NCBI GenBank assembly: GCA_010909165.1
Contig: VJWM01000135.1
Span: 434,001-498,000, forward strand
From: Anthoceros angustus
Lineage: Eukaryota; Plantae; Anthocerotophyta
DNA: 64,000 nucleotides
Direction: 5' to 3'
Shown here one piece after another: positions 37,731-47,657 of the stretch (its first letter is position 1; every line of letters begins with the position of its first letter). The translations under genes and the position numbers were made by a program. The notes under the pieces were generated by a model, which was not told where the DNA came from, did not search any database, and saw only the letters and a program-made list of their open reading frames with translations.

Positions 37731-40497
37731 TCATCCTGCAAAGGCCCCGTATCGTCTGAAATAGCTCCGAGGCTCTTCTGGTGCCGGTCCTCCAGTGATG
37801 TAATTCCATCCAGCATTGGTAACTAGCATCATAGCAAGGCCGGTGATGAAGGAAGCAGTGGACGCTATGGTAAACGCTGTGAAGTCCATGAAACTTTCCT
37901 CTGATTTTGCACGAGGAGCATCCGGTGTTTGTCCAGGTGGTGGTGAAGCGCATGGTGGGAGAGGGAAGCCACACAATCCAGGGTTGCCCTCATATGATGA
38001 CACACCAAATGACCCTTGGAATTGAGGACCGGTCGGTATGGCCCCTGTCAGATTGTTGTAGGAAACGTTGAAGCTGCCAATGTAGGGCAAGTTGGATAGA
38101 GTCGATGGAATCTCACCTGACAGATTGTTGCTTGATAAGTCTAGGGATTCCAGAAGCTGGAGATGTCCTAGGCTTGAAGGAATTCTGCCCTGAAGACTGT
38201 TGTGGGACATATTCAAGTAGTGCAAACCCACCAAGTTGCCCAAGGAATCAGGTATGTCCCCGTCCAGAGCATTGTCCGACACATCAATGGCCGTTGTGGT
38301 CTGTAGCAGATATATGAAGGTCTGAACGCTTCCCTTGATGACGATTGGAATTTCGAAGTCTAGAGTTTTGTTCAGGTCTGCAATCCCTCCCTGCAAGTAT
38401 CCGAGCAACCCAGAAAGGTCTTGCGGAAAAGAGCTCACAAATTTGTTCCTAGCAAGATTCAAGATTTGCAACTCCCGAAAACTGGTTCCTATCCAGGCAG
38501 GAATGGGGCCTGTAAGATCATTGTCTGACAGGCTGAACACCCTGATGGCAGTCAGGTTGCTCAGTGTGTCAGGTATGTTTCCATCCAGGCTGTTCTGCTG
38601 CAAGTCCAGCCATTGGAGAGACGAACAATTCCCAAGAGAATCAGGGATGCTGCCGCTGAATCTGTTCTGAAACAAGGACAAGAACCGCAGGTTTCGAAGA
38701 GCACCTAAACTCGCTGGTACCGGCCCTGTGAACTGGTTAGCAGAAAGATCATAGATCTGCAATGCCGGCACTTTCGACTCAAAGATGGGACTGATGGGTA
38801 TGAAACCTTGAAATAGGTTGTGAGACAGATCTAAGGTGATGAGTTTCAGGAGATAGGAGCCCAGGTCAGGTGGTAAGTAGCCAGTAAGACTGTTGTAAGA
38901 CAGGTCTAACTGCAGAAGCTCAGGGAAAAGCTGGCTGGCATTATTGGGAGGTATGCCACCCGTGATGTTGTTGTGAGAAAGATCCAGTATGGAAAGCTGG
39001 GTGAGCGAGTATATGTTGAACGGGATGGCACTGGAAATACTGTTGCGGGAAATGTTGATGTTGGCTAGGTTGGTACAGTTCCCTAGGCTATCAGGTATGA
39101 CCCCTGTTAGATTATTGCTTCCCAAGTTAAACGCCTGTAAATGTTGCAAGAAGAAGAGGGAGCTTGGTATAGCTCCTGTCAACCTGTGCAGTTGCATGGA
39201 TCCGTCAGTTCCGGCTGTGGAGAACCTTAATGTCACACAAACAAAATGAGAGCAGCTGCAAATTTACTCACCGATTTGAACTGACATCTATGCTTGTCAA
39301 GTTTGCCCACACTTTGGCAAGGTCCTCAGAAACGGTCCCGGTGAGCTTGTTCATCGTCAGTGACAGAACCTGGAGCGGATGCTTCCTCCCAAACAATTTT
39401 GGCAATCTGGTGAAGTTCCCTGTGAATTGGTTGTATCCTAAACTGAGCGAGGTCAGTTGGGTCAGATTTCCCCAGCGGAACTGCAACAAATTGCCTCCTA
39501 GTTGATTGTCACTCAGATCCAGGTCGGATAAGCTCGTTAACTGCGCAAAATCTGCAGGAATCTCGCCACTGATGTTATTGCTTGCTGCACGGAGAGAAGA
39601 CAAGTTCTTGAGCCCTCCCAGAGAACCCGGAATTGTGCCGCCCATGAGCTTGTTGCCCCCAACATCGAGCGCAATCAGAGATGTGCAGTTGGCCAGTTGA
39701 GGTGGAATGAACCCAGTCAGTTGGTTGTCCTGCAGCTCGAGCACCTGCAACCTGGTCAGGTTTCCCAGCTCAGGCGGAATGGGACCGGACAACAAATTGG
39801 AGCTCAGAACCAGGTGGGATAAGCTCGTTAGGTGCGCAAAATCTGCAGGAATCTCGCCACTGATGTTATTGCCTGCTGCACGGAGAGAAGCCAAGTTCTT
39901 GAGCCCTCCCAGAGAGCCCGGAATTGTCCCGCCCATGAGCTTGTTGCCCCCAACATCGAGCGCAGTCAGAGATCTGCAGTTGGCCAGCTGAGGTGGAATG
40001 AACCCTGTCAGTTGGTTGTCCTGCAGCTCGAGCACCTGCAACCTGGTCAGGTTTCCCAGCTCAGGCGGAATGGGACCAGACAACAAATTGGAGCTCAGAA
40101 CCAGTTGCTTCAAACGCCAGGCCTTGGCCAGCGCGGGAGGAACGGTCCCAGAGAAATTGTTGAAGGACAGGTCCAAGGTCTTCAAGAATGGCAGACTGGC
40201 AATGGAAGCGTCAATGGACCCATTCAACCTCTGCCCTGCAAGATGAACTGACACAACCCGGGAATTCCTGTTGCACGAAATGCCTGCCCACTGACAGGGT
40301 GTTGCAGTTGCATTGGGATGAGATGATGCGTTCCAGCCCTTCAAGGCGCCCAGCGGGTCTTCCACAACACCACCTTTGAAGGCCAGCAGGATCCCAATGT
40401 CTTCCGGTCCAGACTGGCAAGCTCCCCCAGATATCGTCACCAAGAGCAGCACCACGATCACCCTGCACACAAGCTGCCTTCCTGGGCCTCCACCCAT
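37731..40497 (-). CDS. LRR receptor-like protein (signal peptide, LRRNT, LRRs, island, TM, short tail, no kinase); 2 exons
   Basis: Exons 40497-39272 and 39183-37731; 88-bp GT-AG intron in phase 2 (SSNR|LTG). LRRNT LLAFKGGVVEDPLGALKGW...CQWAGISC; plant LRRs; GNPGLCGFPLPPC cap; TM FTAFTIASTASFITGLAMMLV. Confidence 0.93.
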
Positions 40498-42115
40498 GGT
40501 AGGATGCCGGTTCCCTTTCGCAAATGCTGCACAACCGTGCCCCAATTGCAAAGCCGAGTCCAAGTGATAGCGCACACAACTGGAAGGTTGCAACCTGGAG
40601 TGCATTGCCACTGTAACTTGCAAGAATTTTGAACTAGGAGTGATGGGTTCTCGAAGTTCATCCAGGAATTTGGGCTCAGCAGGAATGCCTTGGATCCCCG
40701 ATCCAAAACCGTGGCGACCGTGGTCAAGCTCGCAACAGTCCAAAACAGCGACTCCGCACGGCAGACAAAACGCCCAACAGTGGCTGCATGTGTGGCTGTT
40801 GCATCATCAAACCAGTAGCATATTCATTTCAACAGCGCAAGGACCATGGCCCTTTGCCGACGAGGCCTCACCATCATCACTAGTCCGGAAGCCCTCCATG
40901 TGAATGCGGCAGCTGCTCCAGCCTTCTGCCACATGGCAGATGCCCCTGGCAATAGTGCTCATGCGCACGGAGTCTTCCAGGTTCCAGGCACTTGCTTCAT
41001 GAGGAGGCGATACGTACACCCAGTCATTGATCAGCCGCAGCACCTGCGAATCGAAGGTCATGGTGCTTGTTGCGAGCTGATGTAATAGTCAAGCCTTAAG
41101 TAGGTGAGAGGTGAGGTAGGTTGAACAACTGCTTTGCCGTCTCTCGCAGCTGAGCAATTTGACCACCACCTCGCGCCTGTACGTTGGCTCGCTTTGGGTG
41201 CCCTGCAAGCCCAGCTTCAGGACAAAGCGGCATGAATCTTGTACCGATATTGCAACTGCGAGGTCCTGCCTCTACTGATGACTTTGGGTAGCGGCGCCCC
41301 CGCTCTTGGCAGCCCGTCGTTTTCCCAGACTCCTCACCTACTAAAGATGTCTACTACGTTGTTGTTAAAGGCCTTTCAGGCGCACGACAGGAACGTGTAG
41401 TCCCCTGGAATGAAAGCGAAGTTGGGCATTCTGGCAACCCACACCGACATGAACAAAGGGGATAATAGATACAAGAACACGGGGAGCATGCCGAAGACAA
41501 CCTGCTGCTTGCGAGCATGGTGAGGCCATAACCGCTATTACACATTATGTGATGGAGTTGTAGGTCTCATTTGGACCTGCTACACACTGGGTTGTATACA
41601 AACCTTCTGTGTGCCTTGGAAGTGTCCCTCACCCTGTCTTCCTCGAAAATCGCAACCAAGATGGGGAACCGTTCGGTCATCCTTGTTCTCCACGGAGAAA
41701 CCACGTGAGTGCCATGTTGCAGCCAGGCAATCAGGGACCACGTGCCTGCTACGACACAGCCTTCTGCCACCAACCAAGATATTGGGTGGCGGTGATTTCG
41801 AGAGCCAACCCTATGGAAGCTCCACATATGTAGCAAGCTCTCAAGCCTTCTCACATCATGAATAGAACCGTTCCTCTGCTTGTGAAGCTTGGTCATAACC
41901 TGCATCAATGTGACCTCTGCAGCTGGGGGTGCAGCTGCGGCTTTTCTAGCCTCCTCGGCGCCACGGCTTGAATCATGAATCCTGCATTTTCCGCAAGGAT
42001 TCTGACAAGACCGTGAGGATGACGTGCAAACCCTCCAAAGACTCCAAGCTGAGGCTGCACCTTCCGGGCCCTTGATGGGTCATTGCTGTAGGACTTTGGG
42101 GTACCGTCCCAAGTC

Positions 42116-45100
42116 CTACCCTCTCGACTTTGCGGGTGACTGATTCCGTTTAACCGCCAGGCTCTGATTGCGTCGAGAACGGATCTGTTCCTGCTGTTGG
42201 TCCCAGAGAGCACAAGCTTGGTCGACTGCAATCTTGAACTTGGGATCAGACTGGACTGCGTTGGGCAGCAGGAGGCGATCGTTTGCGGTGAACTTGCCCA
42301 ATGATTCTTCGTCCACAACAATCCTGACACACACACGAGCGACAGCTCAGGCACATGAAACAGCACATCGAGCGCAATGAGCGGCCGGATCTTAGCATCT
42401 TACGTTTCCTCTGACCCACACATTCGAACAGGCACCTTGCCAGGCTGTTGCGGTTCATTCTCACCACGCTGCTGAACCTGAGATATCACAGCTCCAAGAT
42501 GTGTCAGATTGTGCGCTCGACTGGAAGCTCACATGCCAAGCGACAACTGGGTGCGATGCCTACCACAGCAGGCCACTTGTGTACGTCCTCCGACTCCAGA
42601 AACACCAACTCACCCACATTCCACTGAAGGGTCAGAGGTAGCCCTGCGATCGAGACACTTCTCCTCGCCTTCTTAGCACGATAGTCATCCTCGTCATCCT
42701 CGCCCTCGTCGTCGTCATCATCTTCCCAGTGGTGGTTTCTGTCTTTGCTTTGAGACTTCCTCGCTGCCACAGACAACAATGAAGACACGTTGTCAGGAAC
42801 ACGGTAGGAGATGTGCCGTGAGATTAGACGAGTCCACGCTGAGAAGCAATGCAATTGGGCCAAAAACCGACTTCCCCTTCGACTGAGGCCACACTACAGG
42901 TGCGGGGCTTACCAGATCTGGATGGTCGACTGACCGATTTTCTGCGCTCACTCTGTCTGATGTTTGACGCAATGGGCCCAGCCTGCGCAACAGTCTTCTG
43001 CCGTGCCCTTTCGGGCCTGCGGTTGTCCTGCTTGGGTGGTAACACCAGGTTGTCGGCTGTTGGTGGGGAAGCCTCCACACCCTTCAAGATGCTCCGAGAA
43101 AACTCCTTACGGCTCCTCTCCGCGTCTGCCCTCAAAGCAACGGCTTCCTGTTGCTTCGCTTCCAAGCTCTCATGCAGACTGTTGATAATATTACCCCGGT
43201 CGGCCAGCTCCTTGGCCCAAACCATAACTTCAAGGTACAATTCTTGCACAGACGAGGACTCAGCCTCGCTCTGCAGCCCCATCCGATCGTGCAGGTCTTG
43301 TTTCTGACGAGTCATAAACTCCAATGCTCGTGTCTTGTCAGCCAACCTCTCCCCGAGAGCCCTGAGCTGCTTGCCATGGTTGCTTTGAATCAAGGCAAAT
43401 TCGAACGATTGTTTCACCGAAGCTCTGGCAGTATCCTGCACCTCTTCCATCTTACATTCCAGCTCCGCGCTCATCTTCTCCAACTGCACCTGCTGTTCAG
43501 CTCGTGCCTTAACAGACTCCTCCAGCTGCAGGCTCAGGCTCTCCTTCTCCTCCCTCATCCTCTCCACGATCTCCTTTAGCGATTCTATCGCCCACACCAG
43601 ATCCGCTCGCTCACTCAGTGCCTGCAGCGTCTCCCCACCTCCGTCAGCAGAAGGATGGGTCCCAGCCCCAGCCTCTACATTCCGCTTCCTCAGCTCTTGC
43701 CGCAATTGCTCCGCTTCCTTCTGCGACTCCTGTGTGGCCTTCACAATCTGCCTCGCATATTCTGCCTTGAGAGCAAACAACTCCCGATTTTTCTTCTCCA
43801 ACTCCGCCTCCAGGCTCTGCACCTTTCGCATACTCTGATTCGAGCTCTCTGCCCTCGAAGCCGCCATTTCCGCATTCCCTTTCTGCGTCTCTACTTCCGA
43901 AGCCTGAGACGCTTGCACCTCCTCCTCCATGCTCCTTCCACCCTCTGCATCTAAACTGTGCGTTTCCTGCCCCACCTGCGCTTTCACACCCCCCACCTCA
44001 TTACTCCTCATCTCCTCTGCCTGCCTCCCTCGAGCACCATGCCCGGCAACCAAGGCCACCAGCTCCTCACTCTTCCTCTCCAAATCTGCTCTCGCAGCCT
44101 CGGTTGCCCTCAAAACCTCCCCAACGAAGTCCTCCTTCAAACTTCCCCACATCACCTTCAAACCTCCAACCTCCGCTTGCAACAACCGCAACTTGCCATT
44201 CCTCCTGCCCAACTCTGCCTCCAAGGCCTCCGTGGCTTCCTTGTACCGACCTATCTCCAACCCCTGGCTGGCCAAATCCGCCTCCAACGCCCCCACCTGG
44301 CCATTCCTCTTCTCCAGCTCCGCCTCCAGCGCCTGCGTCGCCTGCAGCACCTGCCTGGCAGAATCCGCCCTAAGAGCCCGCAACTCCTCCCCCCGCTTCT
44401 CCATCCCTGCCTTCACAGCTCCCAGCTCCGCGCAGGTCCTGTCCAACTCGCCCCTTACAGCCCCCACCTGAGCATTCCGTTTCTCCAACTCCGCCTCCAA
44501 AGCCTGCGTCGCTTGCAACACATGCCTGGCAGACTCAGCTCTCAGAGCCCCCACCTCCTCCCCCCTCCTGCCCAACTCCGCCCTCACAGCCCCAAGCTCC
44601 TCATTCCGCTTCTCCAATTCCGCCTGCAGCACCTGCGCAGCCAGCGCCCCTGTATCCGCCTCTCCGAATCCTCAATCTCGGCAGTCCTCTTCTCCAGCTC
44701 CGCCCCCACCTCCTCCTCCCCTTCTCCTCCCCAAACCCCCATGCCCAAAACCCGCGAGCCAGGCCTTCGTAGCACCCAATTCCGCCCTCACAGCTCCCAG
44801 CTCCGCGTCCCGCCTCTCCAATTCCAACCTAGCACCCTCCAGCTCCGCTTCCAGGCTCTGCGTGGCCTGCAGCACCTGCCGGGCCGAGTCCGCCCTGAGC
44901 CCCCGCAGCTCCTCGTTCTTCCGCTCCAGATCCGCCTCCAGGGCTCGCAATTTCTCCACTTCTTGCGCCATGCTCTCCTGCTTCTTGGCGCTGGCGAGGC
45001 TCAGAAACTCCAGCCGCCGCTCATGGCCAGCTGCTCCTCCGCCACCATAGCCACGGACTTGAGCTCCCGTGCTGGAAGAGGAAGTTGCCCACCTCGTCCC

Positions 45101-45549
45101 CTTTGTAGAAGTCCTCCCGCCCCGCCAACCACCATAGAAGCTGCCCGGGCGGGATCCATCCTCCTGCCCCGCCAGCCCCGCGGCCAGCACCCCTGCCCCA
45201 CGCCTTCCTGTGCCGGCCCTTGTCCAGAAAACACCTCTCGAACGCGAACCCGTCTTGATACCCCTCCAGGCTCTTGTCGAAGAGCAGAGCCGCCACAGCC
45301 GATCCGCCTCCTGCCATCGAACACCACCACCCGCTTGGGGTTGAACTCGGAGAAGGCAGCCCTCACAGCCGCCTCCCCAACAGCCCCGCCCGCCCTGCCC
45401 AGAAGACCCACCCAGGGGTACACCAGCTCCTCCTCCTCCTGCTGCCGACCATACTCGCCATCGCCCTCGGCTCTGCCGCTCCCTCCTCCTCCTCCCAGCA
45501 CGCAGCTCTCGCCCCCTGCCGACTCCACCTCCTGCGCCTCTCCATCCAT
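42116..45549 (-). CDS. XS-domain (IDN2/FDM-like) + long repetitive coiled coil + C-terminal PWWP-like domain; 4 exons, about 5 frameshifts in exon 1
   Basis: Exons 45549-42913, 42763-42564, 42477-42404, 42323-42116; introns 149, 86 and 80 bp, all GT-AG with matching phases 1/0/2. XS: LVYPWVGLL..FNPKRV..FDKSLEGYQDGFAFERCFLDKGRHRKAW..WWLAGREDF..G(E)LKSV. PWWP: WNVGELVF..KWPAVV..GKVPVRMCGSEETIVVDEESLGKF..DPKFKIAVDQA. Confidence 0.8.
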
Positions 45550-46157
45550 GGCCGCTCTTCTTCCCTTCTACAAAACCCACAAACCCCAGCCCTCCCGATC
45601 ATGCATCTTCCCCCTACTCCTGCACCTCATCAGATTTATTTGCATCGCATCCATCACAGCATCGGCACACATAGCATCTCGTACAAGGCACGGCGAGCTC
45701 AAGTTGAGCTCCAATACCATGGGAAAGTTGTGAGACAATACACAGACGGAAAGTAGCAGACCCGGGATTCCGAAAACCCTGGTTCCCTTGGCACCCGGGG
45801 CGGGGGCCACCATCCTTTCCTTGTGAGGAACGAGTACCTGGCTTCACATGCAGCAGCTCTCCCTGAACAATTGAACAAGGAGGAGGGAGTCTACATAGAT
45901 GTCATATGTATGTATGTACCTACCTAGATATTCACATGTATGTACCTATTGCCGATATGTACGCAAGATGTGAGGAAACGTGTCCGACAACCTCATCAGC
46001 AAAAACAAGGGGAGGGAAAAACTGGAGGTTGGGCTGCCATGGCAGCCATGTCTAGTCACTTGCTAGCTATATAGCTCACTACATCCGAATCCGCAAACCG
46101 GGCAACTAACAGAGGAGCATGACAGACACCATTTGCTTCGCACGCTCCTGGATGTCT

Positions 46158-47657
46158 CTACGTGCTGCCGTCTTCATCTGAGGCCTTCAAATAGGAAGGC
46201 TCGGAGTCGTCTCGGGCGTGCCCCTGGCCCATGCTGCCAGCCACCCCCATGTGCTCTGAGCTCGGTCCCCCGCCGCTTCGCATCTCTACATGCTGCATGC
46301 CCATTCCAGACTGGAGGCCGTCTCTGGAGCCAGGTCCTGCCTTCACGCCGTGGCCGTAGTCAGGGAAGCCACCGGCGGAGGATGTGGTCCCGTTGCCGCC
46401 CAGTGACGGGTCCGTGGACATCATGTGGGGCATCGCGTTGGTGCCTCCTGGCACCATGCCTTGTTGTCCCCCGTGCATTGCTTGCTGCTGTTGATGAGCC
46501 GCATGTGACTGCTGCTGCTGCATATATTGGGCTGGGTTGCGTTGGCCTTGCTGAAGCAAGGCTGGATGCTGGGCCATGTGCTGCTGCTGCTGTTGCTGCT
46601 GGTGCTGGAGGTACTGCCCTTGTTGAACTGCAGCAGCCCCAGGGCCCTGCACGAAACAGGCAACGTTCCAGAAGTGAACTAAGAACATGACCCCTGGAAG
46701 GCAAAATGAACTAAAAAAGCTGCAGAAACATGTTCCTCACCTGAGCTGATGTTTGAGGCGCTTGCGGTTGTGCATCAGCTATTGCTGCCAGGTACATGAG
46801 ATTCTGCTGTAACTTGGCCTGGTACCTGTGGATGCACAACAAGTCCGTCAACTTCACAGCCTCGCCTCTTCACACAGCAGCCATACGTTCCTGCATATCC
46901 ATCCTCAAGACACAAAGGCAGCAGCAGCAGCAGCAGTAGCAAGACTCACGATGCACACTCGTTCAGCTTCCCAAGATTCTGATTGTCCAGGATGGCAAGA
47001 ATCAGCTGCTTGTTCTCGTCCAGATACTGCAACCAGCGCACATGATCCCACCGTAAGTAAACAGCAGTTTTACTTAATGTCGCCAAATCTGTGTCCTAAA
47101 CAATGATACGGACCAAGTCTGACAAGAATCGGACCTGGCTTGCCAGAGACAGACAAGGACACAGCTCGAGAGCTTAACTGAGCTTGACCGTCAAACATTA
47201 GGTTTTCAGTACAAGAAACTCGGGCGCACAGCCCGTGACTAGTACAACATAGAATCCAAAAACAATTCCGCGCGAGCCAAACCAGTTGGCCGTCACAGCA
47301 ATTCACAGCAACAACAATGCGATTGCCCCGCGAACGCCTCCAGCAATCGCCACAAATTTCACACCCCAAGACTCCTCGCTCTCCTCCAAGACGCTCTCCT
47401 GCAATTCCCTCTCCCAAAAGCCAGCCTCCACAGGATTTCACTCCACGCTGCTCTCCACGACCCACAAGGACGCAGCTGCACACGCAACCTCCAACTCCAG
47501 GCCCACCAGAATATTTCCACGTTCCTAAAGCCCCAGACCACCTAACACCCCACCCGCACACAGACAGACGACGCAACAAATTCCCGCCAGCCCCGCGATG
47601 GCTCAGAGCAACCTTCTGAATGCTCTCCGTGGTGATGGGACCCCCCGAGTACGCCAT
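46158..47657 (-). CDS. GIF: GRF-interacting factor (SSXT/SNH domain transcriptional co-activator), ~231 aa, 4 exons
   Basis: Exons 47657-47613, 47026-46950, 46825-46741, 46646-46158. They give ITTESIQK-YLDENKQLILAILDNQNLGKLNECAS-YQAKLQQNLMYLAAIADAQPQ, a Q/G-rich tail and C-terminal YLKASDEDG. Confidence 0.94.

Follow-up and report, generated by a model that had tools for sequence, protein, structure and literature searches.

An expressed XS-family gene of the hornwort Anthoceros angustus with a divergent PWWP-type fold at its C-terminus

Among the central adaptors of RNA silencing in plants are the XS-domain proteins SGS3, IDN2 and the FDMs. We describe here a gene related to them in a stretch of 64,000 nucleotides (nt) from the hornwort Anthoceros angustus (contig VJWM01000135.1 of assembly GCA_010909165.1, positions 434,001 to 498,000 of the forward strand), which is called the window in what follows and whose first letter is position 1. 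The gene runs along the minus strand from 45549 to 42116 and combines an XS domain, a long helical rod and a divergent PWWP-type domain, an arrangement that we rate as a new domain architecture within the known XS family. Contigs of four public runs were compared with positions 41700-45900, X1 being from the same species and X18 and X21 from relatives, and the features of the gene are as follows.

45549-42116, minus strand: whole gene, expressed
42913-45549, minus strand: exon 1, with the start codon at 45549, the XS domain and the helical rod; donor after 42913
45025-45432, minus strand: XS domain, read in three window frames because of indels
43100-45020, minus strand: helical rod, probably coiled coil, with internal repeats
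42764-42912, minus strand: intron 1, 149 nt; joint 42763/42913 in RNA contigs X1 and X18, equivalent joint in X21
42564-42763, minus strand: exon 2, with an acidic run, a basic KKARR patch and then PWWP strands 1-2 (VGELVF, HKWPAV)
42478-42563, minus strand: intron 2, 86 nt; joint in three RNA runs
42404-42477, minus strand: exon 3, with PWWP strand 3 (KVPVRMCG)
42324-42403, minus strand: intron 3, 80 nt; joint in three RNA runs
42116-42323, minus strand: coding part of exon 4, with PWWP strands 4-5 and helices (KFTANDRLLLPNA, ACALWDQQQ) and a basic tail
42194-42632, minus strand: PWWP-like domain, spliced, 91 amino acids (aa) over exons 2-4

For the 3' part of the gene there is a same-species RNA contig of 2767 nt, which aligns with 41700-42322, 42403-42475, 42562-42763 and 42913-44561 with 0 mismatches and 0 gaps. 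The introns delimited in this way (42912-42764, 42563-42478 and 42403-42324) have GT..AG ends on the minus strand, and two relatives, at 90-95% identity, have the same joints in their RNA contigs. Since one RNA contig joins them, the three small exons lie in the same transcript as the rod. A first, sequence-only reading of this DNA had proposed three small exons with GT-AG sites and consistent phases, and all three junctions turned out to be exact in the same-species RNA, with the frame open throughout. In this line, 573 codons are open in one frame from 44632 to 42914, and the spliced 3' part from 44632 to 42116 makes a single open frame of 733 codons, with the stop codon at 42118-42116 and a 3' untranslated region (UTR) reaching at least 41700. 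At the 5' end, the three-frame view shows an in-frame stop (45571-45569) immediately upstream of the ATG at 45549, and the leader after this ATG is rich in G and E and is followed by the XS motifs. Altogether, same-species RNA contigs tile 41700-44561, 44738-45376 and 45401-45787, and this tiling, together with the continuous frame, suggests that XS and PWWP are carried by one RNA molecule.

Six XS motifs are found on the minus strand in family order (LVYPW, FNPKRV, FDKSLEG, GRHRKAW, WLAGRED and ELKSV), distributed among three of the window's frames. The in-frame piece at 45072-45317 matches the Pfam XS profile (PF03468) with 23.8 bits (E 6e-5) at profile positions 55-111, just below the curated cut-off of 25 bits because the frame breaks leave only the second half of the profile. 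When an 82-aa window piece served as the XS query against 1.84 billion representatives, HMMER gave four matches, two of them noise and two relevant (P0001 and P0003). The first is a 771-aa open reading frame (ORF) on a genomic contig of another plant sample, which covers the span of window exon 1 and is hereafter called the orthologue. Its XS domain reaches 56.6 bits (E 3.9e-15, profile positions 1-111 of 113), above the cut-off, and the window piece is 69% identical to it in the HMMER search and 67.5% by tblastn. On the other hand, zf-XS was not recognised: the roughly 40 residues before the XS domain are G/E-rich and without a Cys/His pattern, Pfam detects none in the orthologue, and the window protein lacks the module, its first ATG being closely preceded by the in-frame stop. 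Pfam likewise found no XH match (PF03469) in any piece of the window gene or in the orthologue. The assignment of the XS domain to the IDN2/FDM type, as made in the sequence-only reading, is thus borne out by all six motifs in order and by the Pfam matches in the window piece and, full length, in the orthologue; its claim that zf-XS is absent and XH replaced by PWWP holds as well, neither family having been found and the spliced C-terminus matching PWWP alone.

The rod is about 650 aa long, has a composition that favours helix (E 16%, A 14%, L 11%, P 0.2%) and probably forms a coiled coil. A unit of 171 nt is repeated at 44289-44600, and the motif LQATQ.LEAELEKRN recurs. Periodicity peaks at 3.5-3.6 residues, modestly (z 1.8), the Pfam coiled-coil matches are weak, and the ATG16 match of the orthologue (25 bits) is likewise a weak match to a coiled-coil family. 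A coiled coil of about 750 aa had been proposed from the letters; a long helix-favouring rod is indeed there, nearer 650 aa in length and with only this modest periodicity. Identity with the orthologue's rod is about 36%. Among close relatives the rod differs in length, being 36 nt shorter at 43980-44020, 9 nt shorter at 44532 and extended by an extra 42-nt unit at 44797-44838. These indels between species, of 9, 36 and 42 nt, lie away from the frame-break sites and are all in frame, as would suit a coiled coil built of repeats, under selection that tolerates changes in length.

For the C-terminal domain, the spliced 91-aa peptide gave PWWP (PF00855) as its sole Pfam family, with 22.7 bits (E 1.5e-4) over profile positions 1-90 of 93, and PWWP is also the sole Pfam match of the orthologue's C-terminus (23.0 bits, E 1.2e-4). 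Single exons returned no PWWP match in Pfam because the pieces are too short, and PDB searches with single exons or two-sequence exon profiles gave chance matches only (antibody CH1, pilin, TrpRS). With the spliced peptide, 14 of 14 phmmer matches in the PDB were PWWP domains of the HDGF type, and a profile of the two orthologues found PWWP in 15 of its 19 PDB matches, reaching E 0.0016 over the full length of Drosophila LD23804p (6kco). A single-sequence AlphaFold2 (AF2) model was discarded (predicted local distance difference test, pLDDT, of 54; Foldseek not significant). The model that was kept, built from the window peptide and the orthologue's exon pieces with an effective alignment depth of 2, has strands at residues 9-13, 19-24, 37-42, 48-52 and 56-58, followed by helices. 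Against the PDB, Foldseek returned 33 matches for it at E<=1e-3, with a PWWP match at E 1.5e-4; among the 50 matches listed nearly all were PWWP domains, with template-modelling (TM) scores of 0.5-0.6, belonging to Shuguo, NSD2/3, HRP-2/3, HDGF, DNMT3A/B and PWWP2B. The AlphaFold DB clusters matching the model were mostly PWWP-named, and no XS-named protein appeared among the fold matches of the PWWP model. Feature searches with exon 4 and part of exon 2 placed PWWP clusters on top, followed by chromo, Tudor, MBT and BAH, and serve as leads only. With Pfam, PDB profiles, predicted fold and Foldseek in agreement, the PWWP that had been proposed for the C-terminal ~90 aa is accepted here as a predicted PWWP-type fold, divergent and sub-threshold by Pfam's own rule.

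The same arrangement can be followed outside the window, where the loci of the two relevant matches read as follows.

L001 5262-7577: XS and rod ORF (P0001)
L001 7700-7791: extra predicted exon, needed to keep the frame
L001 8030-8158, 8285-8355 and 8527-8749: three small exons with GT..AG borders and phases matching window exons 2-4
L002 300-3360: canonical XS...XH gene, with an XS ORF of 81 bits and two ORFs with XH

With the extra exon, the L001 model is an open frame of 891 codons, predicted from genomic DNA alone. The C-terminal domain is 60% identical between window and orthologue, against ~36% in the rod, and exon 4 is 54% identical to its counterpart. In comparison with a close relative, exons 2 and 3 diverge by 4.5% and 1.4% (for exon 3, 1 difference in 73 nt), against at least 10.8% for the 3' UTR, which also holds all 33 gap letters of the contig piece; from these comparisons the pattern looks like purifying selection on the coding sequence. 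The second relevant match, P0003, comes from the same sample as P0001 and is the XS exon of a gene with XH in downstream ORFs (locus L002), in whose first ORF zf-XS was not detected. The XS domains of P0001 and P0003 share 37% identity (E 3e-34), the linker GELKTVAMV included. Since both loci lie in the same sample, the orthologue's plant has a canonical XS...XH gene besides the XS-PWWP paralogue. Homologues other than P0001 itself were not found by searches with the rod, the orthologue's XS domain or the exon 2 region, nor did a metagenome scan with the exon 4 alignment give a match, and the nearest Atlas clusters to the orthologue are XS-only or XS+XH, some with zf-XS. The XS-PWWP arrangement has so far been seen in the window species, in three of its close relatives and in one distant orthologue.

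Proteins of the XS family are described as combinations of four modules only, namely zf-XS, XS, coiled coil and XH (PMC3378875), and in IDN2 RNA binding falls to the XS domain, dimerisation to the coiled coil and recruitment of paralogues to the XH domain (PMC3342958, PMC3378875). The window protein has in common with IDN2/RDM12 and the FDM/IDP (IDNL) proteins of Arabidopsis an XS domain with all family motifs that leads directly into a long coiled-coil-like rod, and with the XS...XH gene of the orthologue's sample the post-XS linker (GELKTVAMV...). It differs from the IDN2/FDM proteins, some of which have zf-XS, by the absence of that module, by a PWWP-type barrel in the place of XH, and by a rod about twice as long and internally repeated. 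SGS3 also joins XS to a coiled coil in a plant-specific family devoted to RNA silencing (PMC3378875), but it has zf-XS and a prion-like N-terminal region and, unlike the window protein, no C-terminal globular domain. The best sequence and fold matches of the window PWWP are those of HDGF, HRP-2/3, LEDGF/PSIP1 and LD23804p 'Shuguo': its GELVF, KWPA and CG.EE align with GDLVFAK, HWPA and FFGT.HE of HDGF-type domains, which have, as in the AF2 model, five strands followed by helices, and which are N-terminal in their proteins whereas the window PWWP is C-terminal. No paper combining 'XS domain' with 'PWWP', or PF03468 with PF00855, was found in the library searched, and the papers that combine 'PWWP' with 'hornwort' are irrelevant here. 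The earlier statement that no XS-PWWP protein had been described therefore stands for the literature and databases searched, and InterPro may hold the architecture without a published description.

In our view, these observations are explained with moderate confidence by a single account, in which the ~1,040-codon gene of this land plant is intact and expressed, and stands as a paralogue beside the IDN2/FDM-type XS-coiled-coil-XH genes, its XH module having been swapped for three small exons that encode a divergent HDGF-type PWWP. By analogy with SGS3 and IDN2, the XS domain would bind RNA, and the long rod would dimerise the protein as the coiled coil of IDN2 does. The PWWP-like barrel and its basic flanks would then hold the dimer on chromatin or on a nuclear partner, taking the place of XH as the docking module of a dimeric nuclear RNA-binding adaptor. 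Such anchoring may proceed through a protein partner or through the basic flanks, rather than through canonical reading of H3K36me. It is by analogy with the known family members that we infer RNA binding, dimerisation, localisation and docking target for the window protein. A conserved and expressed XS member with a chromatin-type fold instead of XH widens the module repertoire of the family, and the gene becomes a concrete candidate for the wiring of RNA-guided chromatin pathways outside seed plants.

Several findings weigh against this account. Both PWWP scores lie under the Pfam curated cut-off of 25.6 bits, and the confidence of the AF2 model is moderate (pLDDT 62, predicted TM score 0.55). 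Only 1 of the 4 LEDGF cage positions is kept, the domain is acidic in both orthologues (isoelectric point, pI, of 4.5; net charge -7 to -8), and it is the fold class alone that would suggest a chromatin role. Moreover, no single RNA contig spans XS to PWWP, gaps being left at 44562-44737 and 45377-45400; the depth of the same-species contigs falls about nine-fold from 3' to 5' (68.8, 31.8 and 7.5), which could reflect 3' bias or a shorter internal transcript or internal start; and 1 of 5 frame-restoring indels is seen among the indels listed.

The PWWP of PSIP1/LEDGF has a cage formed by M15, Y18, W21 and F44, makes DNA contacts through K14, K16, K39, K56 and K73-K75, and needs both the cage and the basic surface for nucleosome binding (PMC3663649). 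The residues were compared through the HMMER alignment to HRP3, LEDGF having the same motifs.

LEDGF M15, cage: S in the window protein
LEDGF Y18, cage: V in the window protein, H in the orthologue
LEDGF W21, cage: W in the window protein
LEDGF F44, cage: M in the window protein
LEDGF K14, DNA contact: E in the window protein
LEDGF K16, DNA contact: E in the window protein
LEDGF K39, DNA contact: K in the window protein

Because the cage is mostly lost, K14 and K16 are replaced by glutamates and the domain is acidic, canonical reading of methyl-lysine and DNA by this PWWP-like domain looks unlikely from its residues, and a role in partner binding, or chromatin contact via the flanks, which are basic (KKARR upstream and an R/K-rich tail downstream), is more likely. 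The sequence-only reading had flagged a partial loss of the aromatic cage, and the loss is in fact larger than it supposed, the basic surface having gone too: basic residues abound on the surface of PSIP1-PWWP (PMC3663649), in contrast to the acidic window domain. An unlikely explanation, accordingly, is that the barrel acts as a canonical or near-canonical chromatin reader bridging scaffold or double-stranded (ds) RNA to a methylated histone or to nucleosomal DNA. It shares its fold class with readers of nucleosomes and H3K36me, the motif W and LEDGF K39 are kept, basic stretches flank the domain, and its top structural match, the Shuguo PWWP, was solved bound to nucleic acid; but three of the four cage positions are non-aromatic, one of them differing between the orthologues (V/H), the two lysine-to-glutamate changes and the negative charge go against DNA contact, and nucleosome binding by PSIP1-PWWP requires both of the features that are missing here (PMC3663649). 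The proposal of the sequence-only reading that a single chain links dsRNA or scaffold RNA to a histone mark finds no support in these residues. The architecture it described is supported, by RNA joints, Pfam, PDB profiles, predicted fold and orthologue. A modified form of the idea, also doubtful, is a lineage-specific single-chain tether from RNA to chromatin, in which an XS dimer would hold scaffold RNA or the siRNA-target duplex and a remodelled PWWP pocket would recognise, by a non-canonical mode, a histone mark or some feature of the nucleosome. If it were true, one polypeptide would do what IDN2 in flowering plants needs XH-mediated partners and SWI/SNF for, and an early-diverging lineage of land plants would have its own, distinct way of RNA-guided chromatin targeting. 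The degenerate cage and acidic surface offer a test case for a PWWP fold that no longer reads histone marks.

Because of the contig gaps and the falling 5' depth, a shorter internal transcript also has to be considered. It is rather improbable that the locus gives two products, an abundant short transcript with rod and PWWP that starts inside the rod, and an XS form that is rare or ends earlier, in which case the fusion protein would be a minor species or absent. Depth is lower toward the 5' end in both species, the contigs of a relative showing a drop of about seven-fold (168.5, 63.9 and 24.2 from 3' to 5'), and the same-species contigs break at the two gaps named above. Contig depth is, however, a poor measure, and the breaks fall on repeats and on a GC-rich stretch, where assemblers break; moreover, the relative's contigs overlap across the rod (44277-44328), and XS and rod form a single uninterrupted 771-aa ORF in the orthologue.

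The window gene has five frame breaks, three in the XS domain and two in the rod, all within 900 nt.

45306-45312 (approximate): frame break 1, inside XS, from the three-frame view and tblastn of P0001
45064-45068 (approximate): frame break 2, inside XS, in a G run before ELKSV
45022-45023: frame break 3, at the XS end and start of the rod; 4 extra bases in RNA contigs X1 (same species) and X18 (relative)
44640-44760: frame breaks 4 and 5, in the rod, near 44750 and 44650, outside the same-species RNA contigs

By tblastn, the orthologue maps onto the window as one continuous protein through frames 2, 3, 2 and 1 in succession. The site of the first break is spanned by a short-read DNA contig of the same sample that has 2 gap letters over 45132-45390, and at the second the orthologue reads FLFQHGELKTV unbroken. 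At the third, the extra bases sit behind the GT at 45022 and the CT at 45023 and restore the frame, the 4-base insertion giving a continuous EEQLAKYERRLEFLS that matches EEQFAKHERRLEFLS of the orthologue. For the two breaks in the rod, an RNA contig of a relative crosses 44640-44760 with deletions of 1 nt and 3 nt at 44756 and 44758. Over 44738-45376 as a whole, the same-species RNA contig shows 10 gap letters with respect to the window. A small intron in the G-rich 44700-44760 was considered and ruled out, the relative's RNA contig passing through unspliced. With indels in the RNA and DNA contigs where the frame breaks, the breaks look like assembly errors concentrated in the GC-rich 5' part and not like errors of the gene; since one restoring indel is among those listed, four of the five corrections are inferred. 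The frame-corrected protein on which the sequence-only reading relied thus takes five corrections. It is highly improbable that the copy in the window is a genuine pseudogene whose frameshifts exist in this accession. Five breaks do fall within 900 nt; yet at or near their positions the window shows indels relative to RNA and short-read DNA contigs from the same sample, and the one of these that is listed restores the frame. The other 2,200 nt form an open stretch identical to the RNA, and the locus is transcribed and spliced. With the gene mis-assembled in this genome, automated annotation is likely to break or truncate its model. Between 41700 and 43743, 9 gap letters also separate the window from a same-sample short-read DNA contig, and these differences lie in introns, because the RNA contig matches the exons and the 3' UTR exactly.

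With regard to the neighbourhood, a Q-rich GIF/SSXT-like gene with the motif LDENKQLILAILDNQNLGKLNECA lies upstream in the window (46158-47100, minus strand), its SSXT assignment being unconfirmed by Pfam on the piece scanned. A similar GIF-like gene sits upstream of the orthologue (L001 4120-4587), so that the neighbourhood is conserved. Downstream of the XS-PWWP gene, two ORFs of 501 and 491 aa at 37731-40743 (minus strand) carry plant-type leucine-rich repeats and look like a receptor-like protein gene.

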